From the sequence record PV745554.1: a DNA stretch of 64,000 nt. One strand, 5' to 3'. Positions 5,157-56,847 of the stretch are shown here, in pieces; within the stretch, counting starts at the first letter, position 1; every line of letters starts with the position of its first letter. Position numbers and translations under genes: made by a program. Below the pieces are notes generated by a model. That model did not search any database. It was not told the DNA's origin and saw only the letters and a list, made by a program, of their open reading frames with translations.

Positions 5157-5172
5157 TGTCGTGAATCTTGAC
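5157..5172 (+). promoter_or_regulatory. Conserved promoter/operator motif TGTCGTGAATCTTGAC
   Basis: Ends in a sigma70 -35 hexamer; one of ~12 copies; intergenic before baseplate genes. Confidence 0.75.
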
Positions 5173-5225
5173 GTCCCTGGATGAACGTGGCATCCAGGGA
5201 CACTCCCATTCATGGTTAATCCCCG

Positions 5226-5882
5226 ATGCCGAGCTATCCGTTCCACGACGTCCTGTTCCCCGAGACCATCAGCTACGGCTCCTCGGGCGGCCCGAAGTTC
5301 AAGACCACGATCTTCCAGGCCGATAGCGGCTTCGAGCAGCGCAACAAGGACTGGAGCGACGTGCGGCACGAGTACGACGTCGCCCAGTCGATCCGCTCGA
5401 CCGAGGACATGGCCGAGCTTCGCGCCTTCTTCATGGCCCGCAACGGCCGCGCCCACGGCTTCCGCTACAAGGACTGGGGCGACTTCCAACTCAAGAACCA
5501 GTTGATCGGTGTCGGCGACGGCCTGACCAAGGCCTTCCAGATCGTCAAGACCTACACCAGCATCGGTCAGGGCGGGACCGAGTTCACCTACACCCGTAAT
5601 ATCCGCAAGCCCAAGTGGGACTCGATCGCGGGTGTCAAGGTCGGTCCCGTGGTCCAGGTCGCCCCGACCAACTACGAGGTCGACTACGCCACCGGCATCA
5701 TGACCTTCGTGGTCGCCCCGCCGGCCGACGCCCCGGTCACCATCGGCCTGGGCGAGTTCCACGTCCCCGTCCGCTTCGACACCGACTTCATGGATGTCAC
5801 CCAGGAATTCTGGATGCGCGAGACGTGGCCCAACATCCCGATCATCGAAATCCGTGACTGGCAAGAGGTCACCACGCCGTGA
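5226..5882 (+). CDS. Distal tail protein, DUF2460/TIGR02217 (GTA gp12-like)
   Basis: FHDVLFP..ISYGSSGGPKFKT..SGFEQRN..W, GFRYKDWGD and VPVRFDTD motifs; position after TMP. Confidence 0.9.
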   Translation: MPSYPFHDVLFPETISYGSSGGPKFKTTIFQADSGFEQRNKDWSDVRHEYDVAQSIRSTEDMAELRAFFMARNGRAHGFRYKDWGDFQLKNQLIGVGDGLTKAFQIVKTYTSIGQGGTEFTYTRNIRKPKWDSIAGVKVGPVVQVAPTNYEVDYATGIMTFVVAPPADAPVTIGLGEFHVPVRFDTDFMDVTQEFWMRETWPNIPIIEIRDWQEVTTP

Positions 5883-7504
5883 AGGACGTTCCTGAGCAAC
5901 TGATGCAGCACCTCCAGCAGGAGGTGACGACGCTGGCGACGGTGATCACGGTCGTGCGTCAGGACGGCAAGGCCTTCTTCATGACCGATCATGACCGGCC
6001 GATCAAGTTCGAGAACCAGACCTTCGTCCCCTACGACTCCTACCAGCGCACCGCGATCCTGATGTCGTCGGAACTGGAAGTCGACACCGCCGACATCACC
6101 GCCTTCCTGACCTCGGACGGCGTGACGCGCGATGACGTGGCCTCGGGCCTGTTCGACTACGCCGCCATCAAGGTCCAGTTGATCAACTACGAAAACCCCG
6201 AGTACGGCGCGATCCTGTTGCGCAAGGGCACCTTCGGCGAAGTGGTCATGAATCAGGACGAGACCTTCTCGGCCGAAATCCGGGGCATGACCCAGGTCCT
6301 GACCTATCGCGTCGGCGAGTCCTACGCGCCCGAGTGCCGGGCCGACCTGGGCGACAAGCGCTGCAAGATCGGCCTTATGCCGCAGGAGTGGCAGGGCAAC
6401 AAGTATTATCCGACCAGCACCTGCGTGCTGGGCGAGGTTGACCCGGCCAACTCCTTCGTCAATCTCGACGTCATCAACTGGAGCTTTGAGGCCGGCGACC
6501 TCAACACCGTCGTCACCGCGCCGGCCGGCTGGGTGGCCTACGGCGATCCGACCAGCCGCTGGGTCTACAAGCACGACTGGTACAACCTCTCCCGGCCGCA
6601 ACTGGGCGACAAGTTCATCGCCGCGACCCGCACGTCGATCGACGACAAGCAGGAGATCGCCGGCATCTTCCAGGACATCAGCCTCGTGTCGGCCGGCGTC
6701 TCCGAAGCCGACCTCGACACCGGCCTCTGCCGCGTGCGCTACAAGTCGTTCGTCGCCTGCCTCAATAACCGCGCCCAGTCGCGCGAGCGCCTGACCTGCA
6801 TCAAGGCCGACGGCTCGGTCGAAACGATCTGGGACACCGGAGAGAAGAAGTACCCCGAGGATCGCTGGGTCGCGGTCAATGCCGACGACGTCCTGATCCC
6901 GTCCGGCACCCGCGTCCTGCGCATCGACCTGTGGTCCAAGAAGCGCAACGTCCACGAGGAGGGCGTGGCCTACGACGGCATCAAGGCCTCGATCAACCTC
7001 CCGGACGGCACGGCCGGCAACGCCGACGTCTACGGCGGGGTGATGTTCAAGTGCATCCAGGCCGGCGTGAGCGGCGATACCCCGCCGGTGTGGACCAACG
7101 AGATCGGAGCCACCTTCAACGACGGCACCGTGATCTGGCAGTGCGTCACCAACTACAAGCGGGTGGGCACGGTTGACACCGTCGACTCCAACAAGTCGTT
7201 CACCCCCGACGGGGTTGGCGAGCAGGGCGGCTTCTACGACGGCGGCGTCCTCTACTGGGAGACGGGCCGCAACGCCGGCCGCGCTCAGGAGATCAAGTTC
7301 TGGTCGAGTGGGGTGTTCACCCTGTTCCAGCGGACCTACTACCCGATCGAGCCGGGTGACCGCTTCGTCTGCTACCCAGGCTGCGACAAGCGCCGCACCA
7401 CCTGCGCCGACAAGTTCAACAACATCCTCAACTTCCGCGCCGAGCCCGACGTGCCTGGCCAGGACATCTACTACCGCACGCCCAACGCGCCGGAGCAGGA
7501 ATGA
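5879..7504 (+). CDS. Baseplate hub protein, DUF2163/BR0599 (GTA gp13-like) with large internal insertion
   Basis: TDHDRPI N-terminus, CRADLGDKRC, C-terminal GCDKRRTTCADKFNNILNFRAEP; 4-nt overlap with upstream gene. Confidence 0.88.
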   Translation: MKDVPEQLMQHLQQEVTTLATVITVVRQDGKAFFMTDHDRPIKFENQTFVPYDSYQRTAILMSSELEVDTADITAFLTSDGVTRDDVASGLFDYAAIKVQLINYENPEYGAILLRKGTFGEVVMNQDETFSAEIRGMTQVLTYRVGESYAPECRADLGDKRCKIGLMPQEWQGNKYYPTSTCVLGEVDPANSFVNLDVINWSFEAGDLNTVVTAPAGWVAYGDPTSRWVYKHDWYNLSRPQLGDKFIAATRTSIDDKQEIAGIFQDISLVSAGVSEADLDTGLCRVRYKSFVACLNNRAQSRERLTCIKADGSVETIWDTGEKKYPEDRWVAVNADDVLIPSGTRVLRIDLWSKKRNVHEEGVAYDGIKASINLPDGTAGNADVYGGVMFKCIQAGVSGDTPPVWTNEIGATFNDGTVIWQCVTNYKRVGTVDTVDSNKSFTPDGVGEQGGFYDGGVLYWETGRNAGRAQEIKFWSSGVFTLFQRTYYPIEPGDRFVCYPGCDKRRTTCADKFNNILNFRAEPDVPGQDIYYRTPNAPEQE

Positions 7505-7926
7505 CCCGCGACGACATCGTGACCGAAGCGCGCCGCTATGTCGCGCTCCAGACCCCCTGGCGCCACCGGGGCCGCACCGAGCGCGGCCTCGACTGCATCG
7601 GGCTGGCCGTGATGATCTTCGAGAAGTTCAACCTGGAGTACATGGACCAGGACGGCTATGCCCGCTCGCCCGACGGCGAGAAGTTCGTCGACGTCATCAA
7701 GCAGCACATGACGATCGCCAACCCCACCGACCTCAAGCCCGGCATGCTGCTGCTGTTCAACGACGACACCCGACCCTGCCATGTCGGCATCCTGGCGCTC
7801 CAGCACGGACGCCTGTCCCTGATCCACGCGACCGCCGACAAGAAGCGGACGGTCGAAGAACCCTATGATCGTCGGTATTCCGCCCGCTTCCGGATGGCGT
7901 TCGATTTCCCCGGCGTTGAGGACTAA
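7501..7926 (+). CDS. NlpC/P60 cell-wall peptidase (GTA gp14-like)
   Basis: TPWRHRGR..GLDCIGL catalytic Cys, HVGI..LIHA His pair. Confidence 0.92.
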   Translation: MTRDDIVTEARRYVALQTPWRHRGRTERGLDCIGLAVMIFEKFNLEYMDQDGYARSPDGEKFVDVIKQHMTIANPTDLKPGMLLLFNDDTRPCHVGILALQHGRLSLIHATADKKRTVEEPYDRRYSARFRMAFDFPGVED

Positions 7927-7928
7927 GC

Positions 7929-10900
7929 ATGGGCGCAGCGATTGCTCTTCCGATTATCTCGGCTATCGTCAGCACGGCGATCAGCTACGTGTTCCCCGAC
8001 GAGGGGCCGCGCCTGCGCGACGCCAAGGTCTCGGCCTCGACCTACGGCAACGTGATCCCGGAGATTTATGGTACCGCCCGCGTGGGCGGCAACATGATCT
8101 GGTCCAAGCCCTTCACCGAGAAGAAGAAGAAAAAGCGCGCCGGCAAAGGCGGCTCCTACTACAACCAGTACACGTATTTCTGCGACTTCGCCATGGGGTT
8201 CTGTAAGGGGCCGGTGAAGGAAATTCGCCGCATCTGGGCCGACGGCAAGGTGATCTACGACACCACCGGCGGCTCGGAGGTGGTCGACAACAACAAGTAC
8301 CGCTTCCGCTTCTACCCCGGCGACGAAGAGCAGCTTCCTGACAGCATCGTCTCGGAGGACAAGGGTCTCGACTACGCCCCGGCCTACCGGGGCCTCTGCT
8401 ATGTCGTGTTCGACGACTTCGCCCTGGCCGACTTCGGCAACCGCATCCCCCAGATCATGGCCGAGGTCTATGCCGGCGACGAAGGCGGTGCGGCGATCAC
8501 CGACGTCACGCCGCTCTCGGGCGACGTCTCGCCCTCGCCGCCGTCCGGCAGCTATCAACTCGATCAGGCGATCATCGACACCGACCGGGGCTACTTCTAC
8601 CTCGTCGACGGCTTGGCTGACCCGCGCGGCGGCGTGCTGCGCCGCTTCAAGCTGTCCGACGGCTTCGAAGATCGCCGCGAGGTGGTGCTCGTGCCACCGA
8701 CCACGCCGCCGTCGGTCTATGACAGCGCCGGCCTGACCTCCGTTCGCGGCCTGACCTCGAAGGGTGAACTCCTCTGCGTGTTCGGCGGGGTCAACAACTA
8801 CATGCGGATCGAGAAGCTCGATCCCTATTCCTGGGCCTCGCTCGGCACGCTGGGTCGCAGCTTCCCGTTCGAGAACGAAAGCCGCCCCGACTGGAGTCTG
8901 GAGTTCTCCAACACCAACTTCAAGACCGGCCGCGACGACAAGGGCAACTACTATACCCTGACCCTGGGCGTGTTCGGTGAGTACAACATCTTCGACCCGA
9001 CCTCGATGTCGTACCTGTCCAAGGGGCACATGGCGGGCTGGAACGGCCCCGGCACGCCGATGCAGATCACCGCTCGCCAGGGCGGCCCCGCGAGCGCCCG
9101 GCGCTTCTACCACGTCACCTACAATGGCGGCCCGACCCTGTCGGTGTGCAGTCTGGGCGAGACGCTCTACAACCACCCCATGCCGCATCCGGGCGCGGCC
9201 GGCGCGACCGGCTGGTGCTTCTGGGACGAGGGCGACCCCGGCGTCGTCTTCTTCTTCACGGACGGCAACCAGGACCGCTATCTCGCCAAGTGGTCGGAAA
9301 CCACCGGCGCCCTGGTCTGGCAGACCAAGCTCTCCGACACGCCCTACTGCGGCTACCCGGTCTGGGGCATGGAAGCGCGGATCAAGGACAACGAGCTTCA
9401 CTGGGTCTACGATCAGCGCCTGTTCTCGATCAACACCGCGACGGGCAAGTGGATCGACCGGACCTTCGACCAGGACTTCTACAAGACCGACAACGACAAG
9501 ACGGCCGATCAGGTCAACGACGGCGAGAAGGGCCTGGAGCTTCCGCGCGAGATTAACGACGACTACGTCATCTATGACCCGCGCCGCAACATCGTCATCG
9601 GCCTGGGATCGCCGCAGGTCCAGAACGGCATCGTCCACGTCGGGGCCTATACCGGCCAGCGGACCAATGTCGGGCGCATCGTCGAGCAGCTTCTGACCAC
9701 CACCGGTCAGATGACCTCGAACGACTTCGACCTGACGCCGCTCTACGAAATCCCGGTGCGCGGCTACGGCTACGCGACCTCGACCGACGTCAAGTCGATC
9801 ATCTCTGAGTTGCGTAACCTCTTCATGTTCGACCTCGTGGAGAGCGACGGCAAGCTCTTCGCCCGCGTGCGCGGCGACCAGACGGCCGACGTCGAAATCC
9901 CCTGGCAGATGCTGGGCTCCCAGAGCGGTCCCAGCGACGACAAGGCCGACTACTGGAAGGAGACGCGGATGTCGGAGTCCGATCTCCCCTCGGCGATCGA
10001 CCTGACTTACATGAACATCGACGACGACTATAACCCGTCGACGGCCAAGTCCAAGCGCATCTCGGCCCCGGTCGCCACCATGCTGTCGCGCCAGCAGGTC
10101 AAGACCGAGTGCAACCTCGTCATGGACGCGACCGAGGCGAAGAACCGCGTCAACGTCATGCTCTACACCCAGTGGGACGAGCGCACCCAGCACAACACGG
10201 CCCTGCCCTGGCGCTATGCCTACCTCGACGCCTCGGACCTGATCTCGGTAACGATGGAGGACGGCCGCAACTACTTCGACCGGATCGGCTCGATCGAGTT
10301 CGGCGCTGACTTCTCCTCGCGCCTGGAGACCTACGGGACCGACAGCGGGGCCTATCTCTCCGACAAGGTCGGTGAGGGCGGTGGCGCCGGGCGTCCGACC
10401 GTGGTCAACGCGCCCAAGCCCGTCGTGGGCTTCATCATGAACACCCCGCTCCTGCGCGACACCCACGACAGCGGCGGCAACTACTCCAACTGGTACAGCG
10501 CCATCGGCGCCGGCGCGCCCGGCAAGTTCTTTGGCGGCACGATGTACAAGTCCGCCAACAGCCAGGACTACGTCGACCTCTACCAGGAGACCGAGAGCGC
10601 TGAATGGGGCACGGTGGTGGGTGTCGTGCCGCCGGCGTCGCACGGCTGGTTCGCGCTCGACTGGGAGACCAAGATCACCATCATCCCGGCGGTCGAGTTC
10701 TTCGAATTGGAATCGATCACCGACGACGAACTCTGGGAAGGCCAGAACGCCGTCATCGTCGGCGACGAAATCATGCAGTTCCGGGACGCGGTCGAGAACG
10801 CCGATGGCTCCTGGACGATCTGGAACCTGCTGCGCGGCCGGCGCGGAACGCAATACGCTTGCGACAAGCACGTCAAGGGCGAGAAGTTCATCTTCCTCGA

Positions 10901-11414
10901 CGAGCGGTCGATCGAGTTCCAGGCCGAGAACCTGGACACCGCCGGCCTCAACCGCTGGTACAAGGCGGTCGGTTCGGGCATGTCCCTGTTCGAGGCCGAT
11001 CCGATCCAACTGAACTACCAACCCCGCGACCTCATGCCCTATCGCCCGGCCGACATCCGCCGGGCGGTCGCGGGTGGCGACGTCACGGTGACCTGGAAGC
11101 GTCGCACGCGGTTCACCGCCACCATGAAGGACGGGACGGGCGTGGTGCCCCTCAACGAGGGCTCCGAAGCCTACGAGGCCTACGTACTGGCCGCGCCTTT
11201 CTCGGGCGACGAATCCCGTCAAGACCCGCCCGCTGCGTACCTGCGGAAATACGACCTGACGAGCCCGACTTTCACCTACACGGCGGCCGAGCAAACGGCG
11301 GACGGGTATGACGTGAATCTTGACACTCTCCACGTCGTGCTCTATCAGTTGAGTTCGGTTGTCGGCCGGGGTTTCCCCGCCGCGCGCTCGATTGAGTCCT
11401 GGCAGGACTTCTAA
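7929..11414 (+). CDS. Central tail / host-specificity protein (GTA gp15 megatron-like)
   Basis: STYGNVIPEIYGTARVGGNMIW, PAYRGLCYVVF..LADFGNRIPQ, C-terminal LLRGRRGT and WKRRTR. Confidence 0.88.
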   Translation: MGAAIALPIISAIVSTAISYVFPDEGPRLRDAKVSASTYGNVIPEIYGTARVGGNMIWSKPFTEKKKKKRAGKGGSYYNQYTYFCDFAMGFCKGPVKEIRRIWADGKVIYDTTGGSEVVDNNKYRFRFYPGDEEQLPDSIVSEDKGLDYAPAYRGLCYVVFDDFALADFGNRIPQIMAEVYAGDEGGAAITDVTPLSGDVSPSPPSGSYQLDQAIIDTDRGYFYLVDGLADPRGGVLRRFKLSDGFEDRREVVLVPPTTPPSVYDSAGLTSVRGLTSKGELLCVFGGVNNYMRIEKLDPYSWASLGTLGRSFPFENESRPDWSLEFSNTNFKTGRDDKGNYYTLTLGVFGEYNIFDPTSMSYLSKGHMAGWNGPGTPMQITARQGGPASARRFYHVTYNGGPTLSVCSLGETLYNHPMPHPGAAGATGWCFWDEGDPGVVFFFTDGNQDRYLAKWSETTGALVWQTKLSDTPYCGYPVWGMEARIKDNELHWVYDQRLFSINTATGKWIDRTFDQDFYKTDNDKTADQVNDGEKGLELPREINDDYVIYDPRRNIVIGLGSPQVQNGIVHVGAYTGQRTNVGRIVEQLLTTTGQMTSNDFDLTPLYEIPVRGYGYATSTDVKSIISELRNLFMFDLVESDGKLFARVRGDQTADVEIPWQMLGSQSGPSDDKADYWKETRMSESDLPSAIDLTYMNIDDDYNPSTAKSKRISAPVATMLSRQQVKTECNLVMDATEAKNRVNVMLYTQWDERTQHNTALPWRYAYLDASDLISVTMEDGRNYFDRIGSIEFGADFSSRLETYGTDSGAYLSDKVGEGGGAGRPTVVNAPKPVVGFIMNTPLLRDTHDSGGNYSNWYSAIGAGAPGKFFGGTMYKSANSQDYVDLYQETESAEWGTVVGVVPPASHGWFALDWETKITIIPAVEFFELESITDDELWEGQNAVIVGDEIMQFRDAVENADGSWTIWNLLRGRRGTQYACDKHVKGEKFIFLDERSIEFQAENLDTAGLNRWYKAVGSGMSLFEADPIQLNYQPRDLMPYRPADIRRAVAGGDVTVTWKRRTRFTATMKDGTGVVPLNEGSEAYEAYVLAAPFSGDESRQDPPAAYLRKYDLTSPTFTYTAAEQTADGYDVNLDTLHVVLYQLSSVVGRGFPAARSIESWQDF
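11312..11349 (+). promoter_or_regulatory. Internal promoter: CGTGAATC-TTGACA-N17-TATCAG
   Basis: Motif copy inside the 3' end of the megatron CDS, oriented to drive the fibre genes. Confidence 0.6.
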
Positions 11415-11485: not shown

Positions 11486-12325
11486 ATGAGCAACACGCCG
11501 ATCCTGAACATCCCCCAGGTCGCCCCCAACCAGAACCAAAAAGAAGACACGATCAACACGGGCTTCGCGATCCTGGAAGCGGCGCAGAACGACGACGTCC
11601 AGATCACGGTGACGGCGGGCAACTACAGCGTCACCGCCGACCAGTTCACCAAGGCCTTCGTGCATCGCTATTCGGGGCACACCGACGCCACCGTGGTCGC
11701 GGTGATCCCGACCACGGCCCGCTGGTTCGCCCTGTCGAACGAGGGCGGTTTCGCCATGGGGCTGAAAGTCTTTGGACAGGTGCCGGTCGTTACCATTCAG
11801 CCGGGCAAGATCGTCCTCTTCCAATCCGACGGCACGACCCTGCGCGCGGTGTCCGAGGGCGTCAGCCGCATCTTCGACCTCTCCGACGTCGACGGTTCCG
11901 ACACCCCGTCCAACGGCCAGACCCTGGTCTGGAATTCGACGGCCAGCCAGTTCGAGCCGGCCGATCTGCCGGCCGACGTCGACTTCTGGACCAACGGTAC
12001 GACGGGCAGCAACGGCGTGGTCCTGCGCAAGCTCTTCCTGCGCCCGGTCCGCTTCCTGGCCGACTACCTGGGTTCGATCGCCAAGGCCGGCGTGGCGGCG
12101 ACGGGCTCGGCGGTGTTCACGGTCAAGAAGACCACCGGCGTCACCACGACCTCGGTCGGCACCATCACCTTCACGGGCACCACCGCCACCTTCTCGTCCG
12201 ACGTCGGGGCCGGCTCGGTGACCGTCAACTTTGGGGCCGGCGACATCATGACCATCACCGGCCCGGCCACGTCCAACTCCGTCGCTGACATCGTCGCTTC
12301 CCTCAAGGGCGTCATCCTGCAATGA
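11486..12325 (+). CDS. Short tail fibre / adaptor protein
   Basis: ATG 11486 preferred over TTG 11456; N-terminus TPILNIPQVAPNQNQKEDTIN paralogous to the next gene. Confidence 0.7.
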   Translation: MSNTPILNIPQVAPNQNQKEDTINTGFAILEAAQNDDVQITVTAGNYSVTADQFTKAFVHRYSGHTDATVVAVIPTTARWFALSNEGGFAMGLKVFGQVPVVTIQPGKIVLFQSDGTTLRAVSEGVSRIFDLSDVDGSDTPSNGQTLVWNSTASQFEPADLPADVDFWTNGTTGSNGVVLRKLFLRPVRFLADYLGSIAKAGVAATGSAVFTVKKTTGVTTTSVGTITFTGTTATFSSDVGAGSVTVNFGAGDIMTITGPATSNSVADIVASLKGVILQ

Positions 12326-17138: not shown

Positions 17139-17155
17139 TGTCGTGAATCTTGACA
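17139..17155 (+). promoter_or_regulatory. Motif TGTCGTGAATCTTGACA upstream of lysis genes
   Basis: Perfect copy; the TTG start called at 17143-frame lies within this promoter, so ATG 17215 is preferred. Confidence 0.75.
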
Positions 17156-17214: not shown

Positions 17215-17853
17215 ATGCGTGTCTCTGACGCTGGCCTGAAGCTTATCCAGGCCTGGGAAGGTCTCGGCGACGGTAACCCCGCCACCGTGGACCTCGAACC
17301 CTACATCTGCCCGGCCAAGGTTTGGACCGTCGGCTGGGGGCACGCCCTGAAGACGCCGACCGGTCAGATCATCGACGTCGACGTCTTCGGCGCGGCCAGG
17401 GCCAAGGCCCTGGCCGCCGAATCCATGCAGCGCAAGTTCGGCAAGGGCGCCATCACCAAGGCCCAGGCCGTGGACCTCGTGCGCGAGGACGTGACCTATT
17501 TCGAGCGGCAGGTCGAGAAGCTGGTGGCAGGCAATGCGGCCCAGTGCGAGTTCGACGCCCTGGTGTCGTTCGCCTTCAACTGCGGCGTCGCCAACCTCCA
17601 GTCCTCGACCCTGCTGCGGATGCACAACGCCGGCAAGCGCAAGGTCGGCGACGTCTCGCTGTCGGACCTCTGCCAGAAGAGCAAGCTCTCCACGCCGATC
17701 GACAACGTCGCCGTGGCCTTCGTCCGCTGGAACAAGTTCAACGGCAAGTGGGCGCTGGGTCTGTTCCGCCGGCGCCTGTCCGAGGCCCTGGTCTACGGCG
17801 GCCACAATCCCGACGAGGCGGTCAAGGCCGCCCAAGCCTTCAAGGGCTGCTGA
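17215..17853 (+). CDS. Endolysin, phage lysozyme (GH24)
   Basis: LIQAWEG...YICPAKVWTVGWGH, FDALVSFAFNCG, RWNK..GLFRRRLSE. Confidence 0.9.
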   Translation: MRVSDAGLKLIQAWEGLGDGNPATVDLEPYICPAKVWTVGWGHALKTPTGQIIDVDVFGAARAKALAAESMQRKFGKGAITKAQAVDLVREDVTYFERQVEKLVAGNAAQCEFDALVSFAFNCGVANLQSSTLLRMHNAGKRKVGDVSLSDLCQKSKLSTPIDNVAVAFVRWNKFNGKWALGLFRRRLSEALVYGGHNPDEAVKAAQAFKGC

Positions 17854-19250: not shown

Positions 19251-19290
19251 TGTCGTGATCCTTGACATATCGACGTTCTTGCACTATGGT
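19251..19290 (+). promoter_or_regulatory. Promoter TGTCGTGATCC-TTGACA-N17-TATGGT
   Basis: Variant motif with canonical spacing; drives a non-coding region. Confidence 0.7.
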
Positions 19291-19296: not shown

Positions 19297-19594
19297 TCTT
19301 CGACGGCATCCCACCGTCCCACATGGCTCGCGACCCACCGTTCGCAGGGACACGATCGCGACCAAGGCGGTAGCCGGAACGATGCTAGACCGCAAGGTCA
19401 AGCCTCCGGAACACGCAGCAGCCGGCTGGAACGCTAGGCTCCTACGTCCAAACGGGGTAGAGGCTTCCTGAGCCTTCGGGCGAGAGACCCCACCACCTCG
19501 AAAGAGGTTCACGCGTGATGCGGAGAAGGGCTGAAAAGCCCAAGTGTCTGGAAGTGCAGAAGACCCCGCCGGAGCAATCCGGCGGGGTCTTTTT
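19297..19594 (+). ncRNA. Candidate ~300-nt structured ncRNA
   Basis: Own promoter and terminator; GCAA, UUCG, GAAA, GAAA tetraloop hairpins; no convincing ORF. Confidence 0.6.
19561..19594 (+). terminator. Intrinsic terminator
   Basis: AGACCCCGCCGGA-GCAA-TCCGGCGGGGTCT-TTTT. Confidence 0.9.
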
Positions 19595-19617
19595 CTGTCT
19601 GGAGCGGAGGAGCCCGA

Positions 19618-20409
19618 CTAGGCGCGCGCGCGGGCCTTGGAGGCGACCGGCATCGCCGGCGCCAGGGCGCCCACCTTGCCGACCACCTTGCCCAGGATCA
19701 CGATCTTGCTGGCCTCGACGTCGATGTGGTCCTTCAGGTCCGCGTCGTAGATGCGATAGGGGCCGGTCTTGCTCGGGCGCGTGACGTGCGCCACCTGCAT
19801 GGTCTTGTTGAGCCCGTAGACGAACTCGCCGCCGGCCGCGTTGGGCTCGACCTCGCGGCGGACCACCGCCATGTCACCCGGATTGAGGCCGGGGGCGAAG
19901 TCGTGGATCGCCGCCAGGGCCAGATCGGTGGGCTCGGCTTCGAAGCGCTCGCGCAGCCAGTCCGGATCGAGGTTCCAGGTCCGCAGGCGCTGGAACTCGC
20001 CGGTGCGCGGCTTGAAGGTCAGTTCCTCGACCGGGTTGGGCGAGCCGACCCCGAAGGTGATGTACTCGGGGGTGGTCTTCAAGACGTGAGCGATCTGCTC
20101 CAGCACATCGATGTGTGGCTTGACGCTGTCGGACTCGTACATGATGTAGGCGGTGCGCGCCAGGGGCCGACGCTCGCCAGCCTGCTTCGGCTCCCAGCCG
20201 GGTTTGGTGCTGACGTCCTTGCGCGAATTGCTCTGCTGGGTCAGGTAGACCCGCGACGCGACTTGTTCCTGGGTCAGGCCCAGGCCCATGCGGCAGGCGG
20301 TAATGCGCTGGCCGATGGTGCGAGGATGCGCGAGATCGGCATCCTTGTGGATCAGGGAACGAGACCGGTGCGCAGCAACGCCCGGCTTCATCTCGATCAC
20401 GGTTTGCAT
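19618..20409 (-). CDS. XRE-family HTH regulator with C-terminal S24-like domain (CI/LexA-like)
   Basis: IGQRITACRMGLGLTQEQVA HTH; IAHVLKTTPEYITFG; PGLNPGDMAVV beta domain. Confidence 0.75.
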   Translation of the reverse strand: MQTVIEMKPGVAAHRSRSLIHKDADLAHPRTIGQRITACRMGLGLTQEQVASRVYLTQQSNSRKDVSTKPGWEPKQAGERRPLARTAYIMYESDSVKPHIDVLEQIAHVLKTTPEYITFGVGSPNPVEELTFKPRTGEFQRLRTWNLDPDWLRERFEAEPTDLALAAIHDFAPGLNPGDMAVVRREVEPNAAGGEFVYGLNKTMQVAHVTRPSKTGPYRIYDADLKDHIDVEASKIVILGKVVGKVGALAPAMPVASKARARA

Positions 20410-20595
20410 ATCGTTCTCCTCCGTCCGTTGAGAACCGCGTCATTGGGTGTCGTGGTAACCCATGACATTCGCGATGGTTCCCAGACGCAACGTCTGTTTG
20501 CCAATGTTGACAAAGAGGGATTTACACCCTCTTTGGCAACACATCAAGGCCAGAGAAGAAAAAAGTTGACAGGTCGACTTAAGGGTGCGGCTGCA

Positions 20596-21279: not shown

Positions 21280-21296
21280 TATTTTCGGGCCTCTGG

Positions 21297-22661
21297 TTAA
21301 CGGGGAATGTCGAGATGGTCGGCCAGATCATCGGCGCCGCCGATGAAGGCTTCTTCGGAGCCGTCGTCCGCGTCGAGCAGGAAGACCATCGGCGAGGAGT
21401 TCCAGGCCGGATGGCCCCAGTGGTTGCGCACCTCCTCGAACTTGGCGCGGCGACCGACATCGCTCGGCTGGACCGCCTCGTAGGGGATGCCCAGGTCGTC
21501 GAGATAGGCCTTGGCCCGGTCGCAGTGCGGGCAGTCCTTCTTGGTGTAGACGCGGTACACCGTCACGTCCGGATCGTAGGTCTTGACGGGCGACACCGCC
21601 GGGCGCGTGACGCTCCAGTAGCGCAGCGGCTCGGGCAGTTCGCAAACCCCCTCGTCGGTGCAGCCGCCGGCGGCGTAGGGCGTCCACATCGGACGCTGGA
21701 GGAAGGCGAACGCGGTCGGCCAGCCGGCGACTTCGCCCTTGCCGTACTCGGTCGAGCGCTGCTCGAAGAAGTTGGCGTGGGTCGGGGCGTTCATGATCCA
21801 GTCGAGCCAGTCGAAGGGGTTCTCCTTCTGGCCGTAGTTGGGCTTCATGCCCAGTTGCAGCCACCGGCGGTCGGCGATGTAGCGGATGTACTTCTTGGTG
21901 TCCTCGGGCGTGACGCCGTCGACCTCGCCCAGGGCGAAGGCTTGGTCGATGAAGGCGTCTTCCAGGTCGACCATCCGGCGACCGGCGTCGTAGATGCGCT
22001 TCTTGGTCTCGTCGTTCCAGGCGCGCGGGTGCTCCTTGATCAACTCGTGCAGGAGCTTGATCATGCTCTCGACGTGGTGGGTCTCGTCGCGGATCGACCA
22101 CTCCACGATCGTGGTCATGCCCTTCATCAGGCCGCGCCGCTGGTAGTTCATCAGCAGGGCGAACGAGGAGAAAAGCTGCATGCCTTCGCCGAAGGCCGAG
22201 AACACGGCGATGTCGACGATCAGGTCGGCGATCGACGTGCCGCTCTCGCGCTCGAACATGTACTCGTGCTTCTCGCGCATCGCCTGATAGTCCAGGAAGG
22301 CGCGGAACTCGACCTCGGGCAGGCCCAGGGTGTCGATCAGGGTGGCGTAGGCGTCGATGTGGTTGGCCTCGGCCGCCATGAACGAGGCCAGCATCATCCG
22401 CACCTCCGGGTGCGGGAAGCGCGGGCCGTACTTCTCGAAGTAGCCGCGCGCCACGTCGACGTCGGCCTGGGTGAAGAAGCGGAAGAGTTGCGTAAGCTGG
22501 TTCTTCTCGCTCGGCTTGAGCTTCTCGTTCCAGTCCTGGATGTCGGTGTCCATCGGCGCCTCGTGGGGGAGCCAGTGGAGCGATTGCATGATCCGGTAGG
22601 CGTCGTAGGCCCAGGGGTAGGCGAAGGGCTTGTAGTAGTCGCGCGGCTTGAGCAGGGACAT
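21297..22661 (-). CDS. nrdB: Ribonucleotide reductase class Ia beta subunit with C-terminal glutaredoxin domain
   Basis: FFTQAD, EANHIDAY, FGEG, WSIRDETHH iron ligands, ANFFE; then VYTKKDCPHCDRAK...SPMVF..IGGADDL. Confidence 0.93.
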   Translation of the reverse strand: MSLLKPRDYYKPFAYPWAYDAYRIMQSLHWLPHEAPMDTDIQDWNEKLKPSEKNQLTQLFRFFTQADVDVARGYFEKYGPRFPHPEVRMMLASFMAAEANHIDAYATLIDTLGLPEVEFRAFLDYQAMREKHEYMFERESGTSIADLIVDIAVFSAFGEGMQLFSSFALLMNYQRRGLMKGMTTIVEWSIRDETHHVESMIKLLHELIKEHPRAWNDETKKRIYDAGRRMVDLEDAFIDQAFALGEVDGVTPEDTKKYIRYIADRRWLQLGMKPNYGQKENPFDWLDWIMNAPTHANFFEQRSTEYGKGEVAGWPTAFAFLQRPMWTPYAAGGCTDEGVCELPEPLRYWSVTRPAVSPVKTYDPDVTVYRVYTKKDCPHCDRAKAYLDDLGIPYEAVQPSDVGRRAKFEEVRNHWGHPAWNSSPMVFLLDADDGSEEAFIGGADDLADHLDIPR

Positions 22662-25528: not shown

Positions 25529-25634
25529 GGGGTCTCGTTCTCGCGACAAGGCGCGATGCGTTAAAAAGCCCTGAGAAATCAGGGCCTTAAGATGAAAGCA
25601 AAGGATGGTTAAGATAGCCTGAGGGGTCCCGAAA

Positions 25635-36803: not shown

Positions 36804-36857
36804 GAGGTATGGTTAACCGATGTCGTGAATCACGTCAAGAAATGTCGTCGGGGACGA

Positions 36858-40018: not shown

Positions 40019-40031
40019 GGTTAACGAAGGG

Positions 40032-40077
40032 TGTCAAGATTCACGACATTGACTGTCGTGACGCACCACGCTACACA
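40032..40077. promoter_or_regulatory. Divergent promoters: motif on - (40032-40048) and TTGACT-N17-TACACA on + (40049-40077)
   Basis: Back-to-back CACGACA/TGTCGTG half-sites; + promoter faces a non-coding region. Confidence 0.7.
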
Positions 40078-40863: not shown

Positions 40864-41110
40864 AAAACGGGACTGACGCCCGAAGGCCCAGCCCCGTTCC
40901 CGACGACCCAAGGGAGTGCCGTAGCTGTCCCAAGGAGCACCGTGACGGCGTGGCAGGCGACTGAAGCCGTCAAGTCGAAGGGCTTCCGGCGCCGGTCACC
41001 CTAACCTCCGGGCTCTTGCGAGCGCGAGTGAGGTCCTCCTACGCCGATCCTTATAGCCGAGCCTTCACGCGTCCGCAACGAAAAATGTGTCGTGAGCGAT
41101 GACTTTTTCC

Positions 41111-41140
41111 TTGACACCTTCGATTAGGCTCTGGTAGAGA
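41111..41140 (+). promoter_or_regulatory. tmRNA operon promoter (TTGACA ... TAGAGA)
   Basis: -35 at 41111-41116; partial motif TGTCGTGAG just upstream. Confidence 0.6.
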
Positions 41141-41144
41141 ACAG

Positions 41145-41530
41145 GCATCGTTGTAATTCGGACAACGGAAACGGCGGCAAGACGGGGGTGCGATTCCCCC
41201 CGCCTCCACCACCACGAGCCCCTGGCGCTGGGAGTACGCGACTCCTGGGCAGGGAGTGTTACCCTGACGGACCATTGCTGGCCCGAGCCAAAGGTAGCCG
41301 GGGGTTCTTGATGCTGGGGGCGATCAGCTTCGATTGGCGCATGTGACTGGAAGACGCAACGGTGGGTGACCTCCAGGCCAGCTTGCTGGTGATCGGGTCG
41401 AAGCAACAGAAATGTCGCTGCAAATGACAACGCTCCGTTCGCGGTGCGTGAAGCCATCGCCGCCTAATAAGCGGTAGAGGCGTGTCCCGGCGGACGCGCG
41501 TGTCACAAAAAGGCCCTGCATCTACGGACC
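41145..41530 (+). ncRNA. ssrA: Two-piece (circularly permuted) tmRNA; tag ANDNAPFAVREAIAA; outer ends approximate
   Basis: Acceptor piece ending CGCCUCC-A-CCA (41201-41211) precedes 5' GGGGGCG (41316); G3.U70; tag ORF 41420-41470 ending TAA TAA. Confidence 0.92.
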
Positions 41531-42114: not shown

Positions 42115-42131
42115 TGTCGTGAATCTTGACA
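42115..42131 (+). promoter_or_regulatory. Motif TGTCGTGAATCTTGACA
   Basis: Perfect copy upstream of cadherin-repeat gene. Confidence 0.75.
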
Positions 42132-42182
42132 CTCCGGGTTGAGCTAGGCATTATGCCGCTTGACTTTCAGGAGATTTGTGTC

Positions 42183-42530
42183 GTGGCTCGATCCACCCGT
42201 TCCGTCGCGTTGGCGCGCGTCGTCACGCCCGCGCAACTGAAGCGCGACATCCGTATTCGCCGTGCTGACGAACTGGCTGGGCCGAGCGGCCCCAATGGCG
42301 TGGTCCTGATCGGGATCACCAACGACCGCGTCATGGAAAACAGCGCACCCGGCACGCCCGTGGGCGACATCTTCACGATCCCGGCCGGCGCCGACATCGA
42401 ACTGGTCACCACCGGCGGCAATCGCTTCGACCTCGTCGGCTCGACCCTGGTCGTGGGCTCCACGCCCCTGGACCACGAGGCCACGCTGACGAACTGGCTG
42501 GGCCGAGCGGCCCCAATGGCGTGGTCCTGA
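42183..42530 (+). pseudogene. N-terminal fragment of the cadherin-repeat protein, truncated by the duplication frameshift
   Basis: AGGAG RBS before GTG 42183; frame broken at the repeat junction. Confidence 0.7.
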
Positions 42531-45635: not shown

Positions 45636-46031
45636 CTAAATCCGCCCACCGTAGTAATCGCGCCACATCCCTTCCCAGTAGGCCTCATGCTCCTCGGTGC
45701 AGTGCGGACAGTAGCGGCGATCGCGGTTTGGGTCCTCGCCCTTGCCGTCCCAGTGGTAGCAGGTCATCGAGCCGACCATGGCCAGCCGCCAGAACGTGCC
45801 GCAATGCTCGCACCCGCCCAGGGCGATGTTCTGCATCAGCCGGTGGCCGTTCCACCATGCCTGGGGCCGGCGCCAGAGTTCATAGACCAGCGCCGAGCGG
45901 ATGCTGGGGTACTGGTGGAGCCCGACCTGGACGACCTTGCGCCGGCCCTGGGGCTCGACCTTGCCTCCGGCCCAGCGGTAGGTCGGCTCGTGGTAGACCT
46001 TGATCTTCGGGAGCCAGCGGCGCTTCTTCAC
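45636..46031 (-). CDS. Hypothetical Zn-binding protein (131 aa)
   Basis: GTGA overlap with helicase stop; CEHC...CPHC; hidden as the tail of shadow ORF 45636..47501. Confidence 0.65.
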   Translation of the reverse strand: MKKRRWLPKIKVYHEPTYRWAGGKVEPQGRRKVVQVGLHQYPSIRSALVYELWRRPQAWWNGHRLMQNIALGGCEHCGTFWRLAMVGSMTCYHWDGKGEDPNRDRRYCPHCTEEHEAYWEGMWRDYYGGRI

Positions 46032-47974
46032 GTGTCCATGACCTTCGCGATGTTGTCCTCCTTCTCCTTGGCGGCCTGGGCGATGCGCGCGTCGAGCGAA
46101 CCGTTGGCCACCAGGAAGAAGCACATGATTTTCTCGGCCGTCTGACCAATCCGGCAGGCGCGGTCCTCGGCCTGCTCGATCAGGGTCGGCGTCCAGTCCC
46201 CCTCGGCGAACGCCACGTCGTGCGCCCGCGTCATGGTGAAGCCTACACCGGCGGCCTGGAGGTTGCAAACGATGACCCGGCAGGTCTCGTCCTCCTGGAA
46301 CTTGTCGACCTGAAGCTGGCGCTTGTTGACGGGGGTCCCGCCGTAGATCATCGCCGGATTGTAGTCGGCCAGGGCCTCGGCGAGCGCCTTGACGACGTCG
46401 GAGTGGTAGGCGAACAGGATCAGCTTGTCGCCGCCGTCCAGGAAGTTCTTGACCCACGGGATGATCGCCGGGAGCTTGGCCATCCCCAGTTCGCGGCGGA
46501 CGGCGGCGATCTCCTCGAACAGCACCGCCACGGCCGGCGGGGCAAGGCCCAGCACGGCGGCGGCGTAGTCGAGGTTGAGCGCCCGCGAGTTGGGCTTGTC
46601 GGGATCGCCGTCGACGCCCACGGCCTTGTCGAAACCGTAGGCCTGGGCCGTCTCCAGGGCCGCCAGCCCCAGCCGGATGTCGCGCTGATCCTCGGTCTCG
46701 TTGTCGCCGGCCAGGACCGAGGACTCGTAGAGCTTCAGGGCCTGGGTAAGCTCGTCCTCGCGCGCCACCACCTCGCGGATTTCCGGGCTGTCGAGGAGCA
46801 CGACTTGCCGGAACTTCGGGGGAAGCTCGGGCAGCACCTCGCGCTTGTTGCGCCGGACCATGAAGGTCGAGCGCAGGCGATAGCCTAGCTCCTCCAGGTT
46901 CGAGGCGCCGGTGAAGTTGTAGGCCCCGTTCTTGCCGCGCGTGTTGTCGAACCAGCCCTCGCAGTAGCGATAGCCGTAGTCGTTGTAGCTCTTGCCCAGG
47001 CCGTCGGGATCGAAGGCCTTGACGATCGACCACATCTCGATCGGGCGGTTCATCATCGGCGTGCCCGACAGGAAGACCCGCCGCTTGGCGTCGACCGGGT
47101 TGAACCAGATGTCGGCCAGCACCGGCTCGCGGTTCTCGGCCTCGGCCTTCTTGATCTCGGCGGCGTTGGCCTCCTTGCGCTTCTTGCGCACGGCCGCTTT
47201 GGAGCGGGCGTCCATCTGCTCGCCGCCCAGGATGAAGATCGTCCGACCACTGTCGGGGGTCTTGATCGCGTGGCACTCGTCGCAGACCAGCAGGTCCCAG
47301 GGAGCGTCGTGGATTTCCTTGGAGAAGCGCTCCAGGATGTCGTAGTTGATGATCACCACGTCGGTCTTGGGCCACCAGCGCGGGTGGACGACCTTCTTGA
47401 AGCGCGGCTTGCCGTTCTTGTAGAAGCCGTCGCGCACGGTCTCGCGGTAGCGGGTCTCGGCGATCCCCACCGTCAGGCCCTTGCTGCACCAGAGCTTCCA
47501 CTCGCGGCGCCAGTTCTCCTTCAGCGACGCCGGCACCACCACCAGCACGCGGCGGATTTTCTTCATCGCGTTGGAGACGCCGACCGCCTGGATCGTCTTG
47601 CCCAGGCCGGGCGGATCGGCGATGAGCGTGTCGCGCCGGCCCGGCAGGGTGGCGAAGTCGATCCCCGCGCGCTGGAATGGCTTGAAGTCCCAGCCCTTGG
47701 CCTCGACCGCCTTGGAGATCGGCGGCCAGAAATCGCAGTCGGCCTTGTAGGAAAGCTCGCGGCTGATGTTGGCCAGATGCTCGCGCCGCCCGAGTTCGTC
47801 GAGCGCGTTGGCCTTCCAGACCACGCCCGCCACCTTGAGGGCGACGGCGGGATTGTGGGTGATCAGCGCCTTGCGCGGCGGGCTCCAGCTAAAGCCGGCC
47901 TCCTGGAACCGCTTGCGGTCTTCCCATTCGGTGACGGCCCAGAAGTAGCCGTCTCGGTAGTCGATAAATGCCAT
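46028..47974 (-). CDS. SNF2-family (SF2) helicase/annealase
   Basis: ADPPGLGKTIQ, CDECH, LSGTPMMNRP, AAGVGFTM, QAEDRACRIGQ. Confidence 0.93.
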   Translation of the reverse strand: MAFIDYRDGYFWAVTEWEDRKRFQEAGFSWSPPRKALITHNPAVALKVAGVVWKANALDELGRREHLANISRELSYKADCDFWPPISKAVEAKGWDFKPFQRAGIDFATLPGRRDTLIADPPGLGKTIQAVGVSNAMKKIRRVLVVVPASLKENWRREWKLWCSKGLTVGIAETRYRETVRDGFYKNGKPRFKKVVHPRWWPKTDVVIINYDILERFSKEIHDAPWDLLVCDECHAIKTPDSGRTIFILGGEQMDARSKAAVRKKRKEANAAEIKKAEAENREPVLADIWFNPVDAKRRVFLSGTPMMNRPIEMWSIVKAFDPDGLGKSYNDYGYRYCEGWFDNTRGKNGAYNFTGASNLEELGYRLRSTFMVRRNKREVLPELPPKFRQVVLLDSPEIREVVAREDELTQALKLYESSVLAGDNETEDQRDIRLGLAALETAQAYGFDKAVGVDGDPDKPNSRALNLDYAAAVLGLAPPAVAVLFEEIAAVRRELGMAKLPAIIPWVKNFLDGGDKLILFAYHSDVVKALAEALADYNPAMIYGGTPVNKRQLQVDKFQEDETCRVIVCNLQAAGVGFTMTRAHDVAFAEGDWTPTLIEQAEDRACRIGQTAEKIMCFFLVANGSLDARIAQAAKEKEDNIAKVMDT

Positions 47975-48024
47975 GGGTCCGCACGTGGTTAACGCGCGGC
48001 AATGTCGCCCATGACGACGTCACA

Positions 48025-48061
48025 TGTCAAGATTCATGACTTGACCCAAGGCGTTAACCAT
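48025..48061. promoter_or_regulatory. Divergent control region: motif variant on - (48025-48040), TTGACC on +, TTAACCAT
   Basis: TGTCAAGATTCATGAC-TTGACC...GTTAACCAT. Confidence 0.65.
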
Positions 48062-51812: not shown

Positions 51813-51833
51813 GGGAGACTCCTTGCTCGCGGC

Positions 51834-53957: not shown

Positions 53958-54049
53958 TATCAACTCCAGAGGAGAGTGGTTAGGTGGATGTCGACGATCC
54001 TTCTATCCAGGGCATCCGGTTCTGTCAACACACTCGCTCCGGCTTTTTG

Positions 54050-54089
54050 GTCGTGAATCTTGACGTTCTCGCACGGGTCAGGCACAATT
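54050..54089 (+). promoter_or_regulatory. Promoter GTCGTGAATC-TTGACG-N17-CACAAT
   Basis: Motif copy; divergent TTGACA-N17-TAGAAG on - just upstream drives rIIA. Confidence 0.7.
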
Positions 54090-54094
54090 TTCTC

Positions 54095-54343
54095 ATGTGG
54101 TCAATCCGCAACATCACGACCGAAGCCTCCCACTCGATTCGCACCTGCACCGCCAAGGACTACCCGTGGCCTGAGCGGGGGTCGGAGGGCTGCATTTGTC
54201 GCGACCCTGGCGCGCGCCGTGACCGGGATTTCATGCTGCTGATCGACCGCCATGGCGAGATTCAATGGTACGCGAGGACGACATGCCCGATCCACGGCCC
54301 GAAGATCACGACGGTGGACGTCGAAACAAAATCCACGACCTGA
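54095..54343 (+). CDS. Small Cys/His-containing hypothetical protein (82 aa), possibly leaderless
   Basis: ATG just after the -10 box; CIC...CPIHG. Confidence 0.55.
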   Translation: MWSIRNITTEASHSIRTCTAKDYPWPERGSEGCICRDPGARRDRDFMLLIDRHGEIQWYARTTCPIHGPKITTVDVETKSTT

Positions 54344-55058: not shown

Positions 55059-55132
55059 TGTTGGCGTGAGACTGTTGACATCTCTGATTTTGTGACATAG
55101 AAGCCTCCTCGACGACAACGAAGGAGGCTTTC

Positions 55133-55759: not shown

Positions 55760-55768
55760 GGGGCGGCG

Positions 55769-56179
55769 ATGACCTTCATCTGCACCGAACTGGACAACGC
55801 CACCCCCGTCGACCTGGACGCGGCCGAGGCCCTCCTCGCCACGACCCCGCGCAAGCGCGCCAACTTCGCCAAGGCCAAGGGTGTCTGCCGCGAGTGCGGC
55901 GCGCCCAAGCACGAGCGCCGCCTGGGCGCGGACTTCTGCTCGGCCCGCTGCCGCTCGGACTTCCACAACCGGGCCAAGATGGAAGGCGCCTCGATCGTCC
56001 ACATCATCAAGCGCTGGCGCCGTTACCGCCGCCCCGGCGATTTCGCCCTGATGACCAAGATGGCTGATGACCTGATCCGCATGGACAAGGCCCTGAAGCG
56101 CGACTTCTACCCCGATCCGCCGGCCACCGCCCACGCCAAGGTCGTCGCCACCAATATCGCCGGCCGCCGCCGCGCCTGA
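55769..56179 (+). CDS. Zn-ribbon hypothetical protein
   Basis: CRECG...FCSARC. Confidence 0.7.
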   Translation: MTFICTELDNATPVDLDAAEALLATTPRKRANFAKAKGVCRECGAPKHERRLGADFCSARCRSDFHNRAKMEGASIVHIIKRWRRYRRPGDFALMTKMADDLIRMDKALKRDFYPDPPATAHAKVVATNIAGRRRA

Positions 56180-56194
56180 AGTAAGGAGTACAGC

Positions 56195-56449
56195 TTGAAC
56201 CAACCCACCGAGAAGCCCGTGTTCGCCACCGAGAGCGGCGGTTACCTTTTCCAGGTCTACGCCGCACCGGCTGACCACGGCCGCGCCTACCTGGGCTTCT
56301 GCGACGGCGTCCTGAGCGTCAGCGGCGACACCGTCGATGTCACCCTGCGCGCCCTGGCCCGCAAGCACGCCGAGCCCAAGCGCACGGCCCAGGTCATCGA
56401 CTTCACCGCCGAAAAGCTCAAGCGCCTGGGCGCGGTGGTCGCGGCCTGA
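56195..56449 (+). CDS. Hypothetical protein (84 aa)
   Basis: AAGGAG RBS, TTG start. Confidence 0.65.
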   Translation: MNQPTEKPVFATESGGYLFQVYAAPADHGRAYLGFCDGVLSVSGDTVDVTLRALARKHAEPKRTAQVIDFTAEKLKRLGAVVAA

Positions 56450-56838
56450 TGGCGTCTCCTGTCGAAGAGCGCCTGGACCCGACGATCCTGGCCCCGCTCA
56501 TCTACCGCCACTTCTACAACGGTCCCGTCGGCGGCGCGGCCTTCCGCCTCGCGCGGATCATCCGCAACCACGCCATGGGCCTGCCGATCCTGTCGTTCGC
56601 CGAGGTGCTCGACGAGTACCTGAACGCCAAGCTCGGACTCAATGACAGCGCCGACCCCGAGATCAGGGCGGAGAACGAGCGCACCCTCAAGACCGCCCGC
56701 GCGGCGTTCTGGAAGGCGCTCAACGGCATAGGCGATCCCGAGCACGTCGACGGACTGGTCCGCTATGCCCAGGCCAAGAGCCTGAGCGAGTGCATCGCCG
56801 AGACCCTTGAAAAACGTCGTCCGCAACAACTGTCATGA
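56449..56838 (+). CDS. Hypothetical protein (129 aa)
   Basis: TGATG coupling. Confidence 0.65.
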   Translation: MASPVEERLDPTILAPLIYRHFYNGPVGGAAFRLARIIRNHAMGLPILSFAEVLDEYLNAKLGLNDSADPEIRAENERTLKTARAAFWKALNGIGDPEHVDGLVRYAQAKSLSECIAETLEKRRPQQLS

Positions 56839-56847
56839 ATCTTGACA
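56831..56847 (+). promoter_or_regulatory. Motif variant TGTCATGAATCTTGACA
   Basis: Perfect dyad TGTCA-N7-TGACA upstream of the primase gene. Confidence 0.7.

Follow-up and report, generated by a model that had tools for sequence, protein, structure and literature searches.

The question raised by the stretch of DNA considered here, 64,000 nucleotides (nt) from the genome of Caulobacter phage BL64 (record PV745554.1, positions 62001-126000; this stretch is called the window, its position 1 being record position 62001), is what a 17-bp motif recurring ahead of its genes stands for, and by which protein, if any, it is read. BL64 is a CcrRogue/phiCbK-type jumbo siphophage of 224,634 bp, belongs to the species Poindextervirus rogue and has Caulobacter vibrioides CB15 as its host. 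The initial annotation, made from the letters of the window alone, had proposed a promoter with an operator-like dyad running into the -35 box and containing a GANTC site, and either responding to host cell-cycle methylation or read by a phage helix-turn-helix (HTH) regulator. Judged by its sequence context, the 17-mer marks about 21 host-type promoters of BL64. The whole explanation favoured here, namely a promoter family with an operator for a lineage-specific phage protein, in which the -35 hexamer serves as the second half-site, is offered as an evenly balanced proposition. Gene context was taken from the annotation of the entire BL64 record, and the genomes used for comparison were those of phiCbK, CcrColossus (Colossus below; first 150 kb) and the Brevundimonas phages Bajun and Kabachok (40-kb stretches). 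Positions are those of the window unless the record or another genome is named.

A scan of the window with TGTCGTGAATCTTGACA, allowing up to 3 mismatches, returned 13 matches against 0.09 expected, and none of the 100 dinucleotide shuffles used as background reached 13. All 12 copies of the earlier list exist, nine of them exactly where they had been placed and three displaced by 1-3 nt (11312, 25635 and 54050 are in fact 11309, 25634 and 54049); the thirteenth, absent from that list, lies at 36821-36837, is palindromic and has no TTGACA. The dyad, rightly described as imperfect, can be refined to TGTC-nn-GAnTC-nn-GACA, with GANTC at its exact centre, and GAATC, said to be nearly always present, is found in 12 of the 13 window copies, the copy at 19251 having GATCC instead. 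Self-complementary positions number 12 of 17 in the promoter copies, 14 of 17 at 36821 and up to 16 of 17 in the palindromes of Colossus.

In the whole genome 21 copies are found with up to 2 mismatches, all at 20.6-119 kb save a single copy at 208 kb ahead of the packaging genes; the scan gave none in the terminal repeats, and none among the small hypothetical genes of the 120-207 kb block. In phiCbK the copies likewise number 21. The motif is restricted to the structural, lysis, nucleotide/replication and packaging modules, and the regulon suggested earlier, across tail, lysis, RNA, nucleotide-metabolism and replication genes, is borne out in so far as copies precede all of these. The sequence GAATCTTGAC has 19 occurrences in the genome against 0.3 expected. 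The left half-site as a stand-alone motif was tried and rejected: it occurs 48 times against 41 expected, 22 of these occurrences lie within copies, and there is no enrichment outside the 17-mer, therefore the element exists only as a unit. An exact-pattern scan of IMG/VR yielded multi-copy matches from Rogue, BL10 and Karma only, single matches elsewhere being at chance level, and a 17-mer scan of 185,579 bacterial genomes gave no Caulobacter chromosome among the matches listed. An identical 17-mer was met in a verrucomicrobial (Opitutaceae) metagenome-assembled genome as part of a longer repeat, GGGGTCA followed by the 17-mer, which has many occurrences, frequently in inverted pairs spaced by about 40 nt. 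This repeat seems to have no relation to the phage element and to be of the kind of miniature inverted-repeat transposable elements or repetitive extragenic palindromes, or else to be mis-binned DNA.

All 21 genomic copies are aligned with the next gene and 20 of them sit 30-190 nt before an annotated start, while one, at 19251, has no annotated gene downstream and precedes an RNA and a terminator. The statement that almost all copies are intergenic and co-oriented with the downstream gene agrees with the record annotation, with three qualifications (11309, 54049 and 19251; Table 1). The -35 hexamer TTGACA is intact in 17 of the 21 copies, the other four differing by one base, in agreement with the TTGACA/TTGACGS pattern of sigma-70 and Caulobacter sigma-73 promoters; the alignment of the copies has only three informative columns after the motif, G at 16 nt (17/21), A at 19 nt (15/21) and T at 23 nt (14/21). 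The resulting layout comprises a 17-nt spacer and a weak -10 hexamer, YAnnnT, with a G two bases 5' of it, the G of an extended -10 element. A 17-nt spacer and a conserved weak -10 following the copies make them promoters of the sigma-70/sigma-73 type. The idea of a promoter with an operator-like dyad running into the -35 box is thereby upheld. Over 22 orthologous sites of BL64 and phiCbK, ungapped identity is highest in the 17-mer (97.6%) and the -10 hexamer (92%), lower in the spacer (78%) and downstream (71%), and lowest in the 40 nt upstream (54%). The 17-mer of the endolysin copy (17139) is identical in Karma and phiCbK despite an unrelated upstream flank, and copy 11309 is kept in Rogue, BL10, Karma and phiCbK.

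Transcription would start about 30 nt after the motif, sometimes at the start codon itself, and leaderless messages are predicted from several copies. At copy 54049 the in-frame ATG 54095 is found 6 nt past the -10 hexamer, a geometry kept in phiCbK at 113272; the 5' end of gene 53984-54343 is probably mis-called and its message probably leaderless from this ATG. Similarly, the annotated ATG of the N6-adenine methylase gene (39317-40018) lies only 13 nt past copy 40032, so that the real start is probably the second ATG. A small opposite-strand open reading frame (ORF), 42167-42295, falls within the predicted 5' leader of the operon after copy 42115 and is a probable annotation problem. That the 17-mer is a non-transcriptional repeat serving replication, recombination or packaging is scarcely credible: its copies are dispersed roughly regularly and their orientation tracks the gene-block strand switch, which also tracks GC skew, but their fixed short distance to start codons, the -10 conserved at 17 nt, the lack of the element in half of the genome and the RNA-plus-terminator unit following one copy all argue against it.

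A listing of every TTGACA in the genome disclosed a second promoter family of the pattern TTGGCGTGAGAGTG-TTGACA-N16-CTAGAAG, with CGACGACAACGAAGGAG coming next, ahead of the start codon. Its copies, roughly 16-25 in number, are confined to small, presumably early genes at 117-197 kb, and the family is seen in Bajun too. Its conserved leader is akin to the 'start-associated sequences' of other phages. One member, the early-class rIIA promoter on the minus strand, stands back to back with copy 54049. At least two families are thus built around a shared -35 hexamer, therefore it is the upstream bases that define the promoter class.

The same architecture recurs in sister lineages with a different left half. 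The left element is TGTCGTGA in BL64, TGCCAGGA in Colossus, CGTCGTGA in Bajun and TGCCGTA(A/T) in Kabachok, and two metagenomic relatives have TGCCG(C/T)GA and TGACGTGA. Orthologous genes of Colossus (scaffold, tail tube, the gene after the tape measure, nrdA, methylase, rIIA and others) carry TGCCAGGAATC-TTGACA, three positions being changed in concert relative to BL64 across about 24 copies. Co-variation extends to the cytosine-methylase promoter, whose spacer has the element in inverted form; there it reads TGTCGTGA, TGCCAGGA, CGTCGTGA and TGCCGTA in the four lineages. In BL64 this promoter is composed, on the minus strand, of TTGACG (36838-36833), a 17-nt spacer, TAACCA (36815-36810) and, after 6 nt, the ATG at 36803; the 36821 element lies inside it and therefore covers the -35 box and the spacer. 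In Colossus the half-site of that lineage forms at least six near-perfect palindromes, likewise with a one-base centre. The -35 hexamer (TCTTGACA) would supply the second half-site of the promoter copies; it departs from the ideal TCACGACA at two positions, and the Colossus hexamer departs from the ideal half of its own lineage at two positions as well. If a dimeric DNA-binding protein co-evolved with its site, all copies and the inverted partner would be expected to change together, as they do; a signal for the host polymerase alone does not predict this. At the level of sequence, these comparisons establish the anatomy of the promoters, their conservation and their co-variation with lineage.

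According to the proposed mechanism, positions 12-17 of the motif (TTGACA) would be the -35 hexamer and positions 1-8 (TGTCGTGA) one half-site of a 17-bp pseudo-palindromic operator whose other half is the same hexamer. The operator would be read by a dimeric DNA-binding protein, presumably encoded by the phage because the operator sequence is specific to each phage lineage, and this protein would serve the structural, lysis, nucleotide/replication and packaging operons jointly as a brake or timer. That a protein binds to the 17-mer is considered probable on the grounds of these sequence patterns. It could be argued that no phage factor is involved at all, the 11 bases 5' of the -35 box being an extended promoter element for the host polymerase (UP-like, or contacted by sigma region 4 or alpha) and the dyad a coincidence. 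The element does occupy the position of the proximal UP subsite (-46 to -38), and the 3 bases adjoining the -35 box are A/T-rich in all lineages. However, these 3 bases are the only A/T ones, TGTCGTG being G+C-rich, whereas a UP element is an A/T-rich tract from -59 to -38; BL64 and Colossus share their host species yet differ in the left element, concertedly in all copies; the second promoter class of the same genome has a different upstream element; and the element is met again in inverted form within spacers, and in near-perfect palindromes that have no -35 box on the same strand. Such a reading is improbable.

The GANTC at the centre of the dyad had suggested that GcrA, of the host or of the phage, activates these promoters via CcrM-methylated GANTC and so couples phage transcription to the host cell cycle. 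Of the two readers named in the initial annotation, the phage HTH regulator is reasonable, but the methylation route through GcrA finds no support in the flanks of the site, in its position, in the relatives or in Colossus, which has no GcrA, and is very improbable. In its favour, the genome-wide comparison with background GANTC, which had been proposed along with it, finds the site in 20 of the 21 copies, yet depleted in BL64 as a whole (276 sites where 671 would be expected); BL64 has a GcrA homologue, whose DNA-binding and sigma-interacting domains are both conserved; and it is in the phages encoding a GcrA of their own that GANTC is nearly invariant. Nevertheless, AGATTCA ranks last, 32nd, among the 32 NGANTCN variants ordered by GcrA preference (PMC4647560), and the GANTC of the motif with its flanks, TGAATCT, is this very site; YGAKTCK flanks are not matched, and the N is A or T only, never G or C. 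GcrA boxes lie at -20±1, at -30±2 or from +5 to +30, and their absence further upstream has been attributed to the length of the GcrA linker (PMC9976885). The GANTC of the dyad, given the 17-nt spacer, is centred at about -38 and thus outside these windows. It is missing from most same-architecture promoters of the relatives (present in 8 of 24 in Colossus, 2 of 6 in Bajun and 0 of 6 in Kabachok), and a phage GcrA was not found in Colossus, which nonetheless has the promoter family, so that a correlation of the motif with phage GcrA was rejected. The DNA (adenine) methylase encoded downstream of copy 40032 was rejected as a CcrM-like enzyme, its motif order FAGNG...NPPY being of the gamma type as opposed to the beta type of CcrM, and no Pfam or PDB sequence match being obtained for it. 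Each half-site has GA at its inner end, and a single base separates the two; GANTC results from this arrangement and seems to be a by-product, not a cell-cycle sensor.

There is a slim chance that the central GANTC makes binding by the phage regulator or by the phage GcrA homologue sensitive to CcrM methylation, and the restriction of near-invariant GANTC to lineages carrying a phage gcrA was counted for it. About 20 promoters would then distinguish phage DNA that has just entered (methylated) from DNA that has just been replicated (unmethylated or hemimethylated), which would give the phiCbK/Rogue lineage a replication- or cell-cycle-coupled transcription switch. As regards GANTC density, it is 1.29/kb in BL64, 0.41 of the composition expectation and similar to that of the host with its reported 4542 sites, and 3.04/kb, near expectation, in Colossus (1-150 kb). 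The GANTC-depleted phages are those with a gcrA homologue, and codon usage may suffice as the cause.

Which protein would read the operator can be answered only tentatively. The leading candidate, for which the chances fall clearly short of even, is the protein of CI/LexA fold encoded at 19618-20409. It matches Pfam HTH_3 and the PHROG category 'transcriptional repressor', and by profile 434 Cro, P22 C2 and lambda CI; its AlphaFold2 model has a predicted local distance difference test score of 79.6, and the top Foldseek matches are full-length 186 CI, LexA and lambda CI. The catalytic serine of LexA is apparently replaced, as judged by manual alignment only. Orthologues, among them gp109 of phiCbK and gp140 of Colossus, are present in every lineage with the promoter family, and the recognition helices are ARTAYI with TGTC, SRPAYN with CGTC and SRSAYC with TG(C/A)C. 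Colossus gp133, annotated as similar to the C-terminal domain of alpha, was discarded as a reader of the upstream element, as it is absent from the phiCbK and Rogue types.

Provided that the protein binds, repression is somewhat favoured over activation. The bound dimer would extend from -46 to -30, and from -34 to -18 at the cytosine-methylase promoter, where the inverted element in the spacer would take the classical position of a repressor; such coverage favours repression, in which the bound protein would most likely compete with sigma region 4. Lambda CI activates at PRM, and Mor does so at the Mu middle promoter. The same phage protein could accordingly be an activator that binds chiefly the left half-site near -42, contacts sigma region 4 or alpha, turns on promoters with weak -10 elements, and represses only from the spacer. 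This is unlikely, even if several points speak for it: the geometry is that of a class II activator, the left half-site being centred at about -42.5; the promoters have weak -10 elements; expression of structural and lysis genes increases mid or late in infection; the regulator gene closes an operon that is expressed early; and the Mu Pm promoter has a 16-bp dyad centred at -43.5 (PMC4390567). The consensus -35 in 17 of the 21 copies is unlike typical activator-dependent promoters, the dyad centre at -38 puts a symmetric dimer on the -35 box, and motif-bearing replication genes are expressed already at 15 min.

Several points weigh against the promoter-operator explanation as a whole. The phiCbK time course (PMC10688885) classes replication genes as early, and structural and lysis genes as middle or late. 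As the motif is found before genes of both kinds, timing cannot depend on it alone; inspection of the aligned copies revealed no timing-related difference between the -10 elements of replication and structural promoters. A consensus -35 alone is not proof of an overlapping operator, and the copy sets of the other lineages were chosen partly by eye among regex matches. The SRSAYC helix, moreover, is identical in four lineages with differing inner half-sites, and only the outer TG(C/A)C as opposed to TGTC tracks the helix. Co-variation of recognition helix and half-site is weak; with one helix facing four inner half-sites, the binder may be another protein.

Further sites related to the element lie outside the 21 copies. 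A near-palindromic one, TGTCGTGATTTACGACT, is located at record 141449-141465, just past the -10 of an early-class promoter before an RtcB-like ligase gene, and is kept in phiCbK at 137895; by its placement it would be a second repressor-like site. Colossus has one palindrome of BL64 type, TGCCGTGAATCACGACA, at 110800, 234 nt upstream of its CI-like regulator gene, and in BL64 the regulator gene is preceded, at a distance of about 50 nt, by TGTCATGG-GTTA-CCACGACA (window approximately 20446-20465); both may be autoregulatory sites.

A separate motif, GTTAACCA(T/C)G, has 7 copies in the window against 1.6 expected, and of the 31 GTTAAC sites of the genome 10 fall inside 167-nt windows around promoter copies, against 0.5 expected. 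Sites of this type are located in the spacer or just past the -10 element, and these places are conserved in Colossus and Kabachok too. The motif is similar to the Caulobacter CtrA/SciP half-site motif TTAACCAT. It could link the promoters to the CtrA-based 'lytic deferment' proposed in PMC9437464.

The copy at 19251, the RNA following it and the terminator of the latter make a complete transcription unit, situated between the lysis cassette and the regulator gene and convergent to the latter. The RNA has 85% mean column identity in 5 phages, and 84 predicted pairs, 9 of them with compensatory changes; it contains no ORF of at least 20 aa from a conserved ATG and matched no Rfam family. A second RNA, a permuted (two-piece), full-length transfer-messenger RNA (tmRNA), was recognized at 41149-41467 (+) with an Rfam score of 88.5 bits, the gathering score being 47. 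It is absent from the BL64 annotation and from Gill 2012, and it overlaps a 'hypothetical' minus-strand ORF, 41065-41406; ARAGORN made no tmRNA call at this position.

Table 1. Copies of the 17-mer and related features in the window (window positions; -10 elements and promoter assignments are predictions).
Feature	Position	Strand	Details
Promoter copy TGTCGTGAATCTTGACG	5157-5173	+	-10 CATCCA at 5191-5196; drives 5226-5882 (glycoside hydrolase, tail module); phiCbK orthologous copy at 65668
Promoter copy TGACGTGAATCTTGACA	11309-11325	+	Within last 100 nt of tail gene 7929-11414; upstream of tail-fibre gene 11486-12325
Perfect copy	17139-17155	+	Promoter of lysis cassette: endolysin 17215-17853, spanins, holin
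GATCC copy (no GANTC)	19251-19267	+	TTGACA, 17 nt, TATGGT; best sigma-70 match, 10/12; drives unannotated structured RNA
Conserved non-coding RNA, ~270-300 nt	19298-19597	+	Intrinsic terminator ~19560-19597; unannotated
Candidate trans-acting factor, 263 aa	19618-20409	-	Cro/CI-type HTH and LexA-like C-terminal domain
Promoter copy	25634-25650	-	TTGACT, 17 nt, TATCTT; ribonucleotide reductase operon 22715-25528 and downstream, regulator gene last
Promoter copy, CTGACA variant	26589-26605	-	Serves 26251-26550 and downstream genes
Perfect copy	32811-32827	-	Promoter of exonuclease gene 32133-32762
Near-palindromic copy TGTCGTGA-A-TCACGTCA	36821-36837	none	Within cytosine-methylase promoter; identical in phiCbK
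Perfect copy	40032-40048	-	Promoter for N6-adenine methylase 39317-40018 and T5 A1-like gene; GTTAACCATG in spacer
Perfect copy	42115-42131	+	Upstream of 42300-42530 and 858-aa cadherin-like gene; no phiCbK counterpart
Copy AGTCATGAATCTTGACA	48025-48041	-	Promoter of DNA helicase gene 46028-47974; GTTAACC motif on both sides
Copy GGTCGTGAATCTTGACG	54049-54065	+	-10 CACAAT at 54083-54088; in-frame ATG 54095; within annotated 5' end of gene 53984-54343
Copy TGTCATGAATCTTGACA	56831-56847	+	Promoter of 1218-aa gene 56906-60562
Second-family copy (TTGACA)	54023-54028	-	rIIA promoter; rest of family (beyond the three here) at record 129-197 kb
Second-family copy	55075-55080	+	
Second-family copy	61083-61088	+	
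GTTAACCA(T/C)G site	21295-21301		
GTTAACCA(T/C)G site	32790-32796		
GTTAACCA(T/C)G site	36811-36818		
GTTAACCA(T/C)G site	40019-40025		
GTTAACCA(T/C)G site	47987-47993		
GTTAACCA(T/C)G site	48053-48059		

Among known systems, the closest kin by analogy would be the operators of CI, Cro and LexA. Those of lambdoid phages and of 186, and LexA boxes, are likewise 17-bp pseudo-palindromes with symmetry mostly in the outer 4-5 bp of the halves, overlap the -35 box or the spacer, and have a CI/LexA-fold HTH protein encoded nearby; one protein could repress or activate depending on position. They differ from BL64 in forming 2-3 clustered operators of an immunity region, as against about 21 copies dispersed over structural, lysis and replication operons; BL64, moreover, is not known as temperate, one of its half-sites is constrained to be the -35 hexamer, and, by the manual alignment, the LexA-like domain of its candidate protein is apparently without the catalytic serine. 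In regulon logic, the nearest analogues may be the promoters of Mu or the middle promoters of T4. The middle and late promoters of Mu, served by Mor and C, also form a sigma-70 class with a 16-17-bp dyad that overlaps the -35 region or lies directly 5' of it and is read by a phage-encoded dimer (PMC4390567), such a reader being only predicted for BL64; however, the Mu dyad, centred at -43.5, replaces a poor -35, whereas that of BL64 is centred at -38 and includes a consensus -35. No Mor or C homologue was seen in BL64, no search aimed at one having been made. The T4 middle promoters (MotA box/AsiA) of another large lytic phage share with BL64 a class-defining element 5' of a sigma-70 -10, which separates the class from early promoters, but the MotA box takes the place of the -35, at -30, and depends on sigma appropriation, while the -35 of BL64 is intact and part of the element. 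The Caulobacter promoters controlled by GcrA and CcrM resemble those of BL64 in being of the sigma-70 type with a nearby GANTC, and BL64 has a phage GcrA homologue; they differ in that the BL64 flanks are the worst-ranked, the -38 position is outside the GcrA windows and GANTC is not conserved in the sister lineages. BL64 is unusual in having so many dispersed copies, in employing the -35 hexamer as a half-site and in the clean co-variation with lineage. In the literature no description of promoters of phiCbK-type phages was found, 'promoter' occurring once in Gill 2012, and the promoter/operator family is apparently undescribed, although of a known kind.

The phiCbK-type phages are standard tools of Caulobacter cell-cycle research, and the attractive but unsupported link of their transcription to GcrA and CcrM through this motif is hereby removed. 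In its place stands a promoter map with two classes, predicted transcription starts and several corrected gene starts, which lets the published infection transcriptome be interpreted, together with a predicted regulon of about 20 operons under one phage-encoded factor. The half-site that changed concertedly between sister phages of the same host constitutes a natural experiment and allows specificity-swap tests, and the lineages may provide orthogonal promoter/regulator pairs for a GC-rich alphaproteobacterium.

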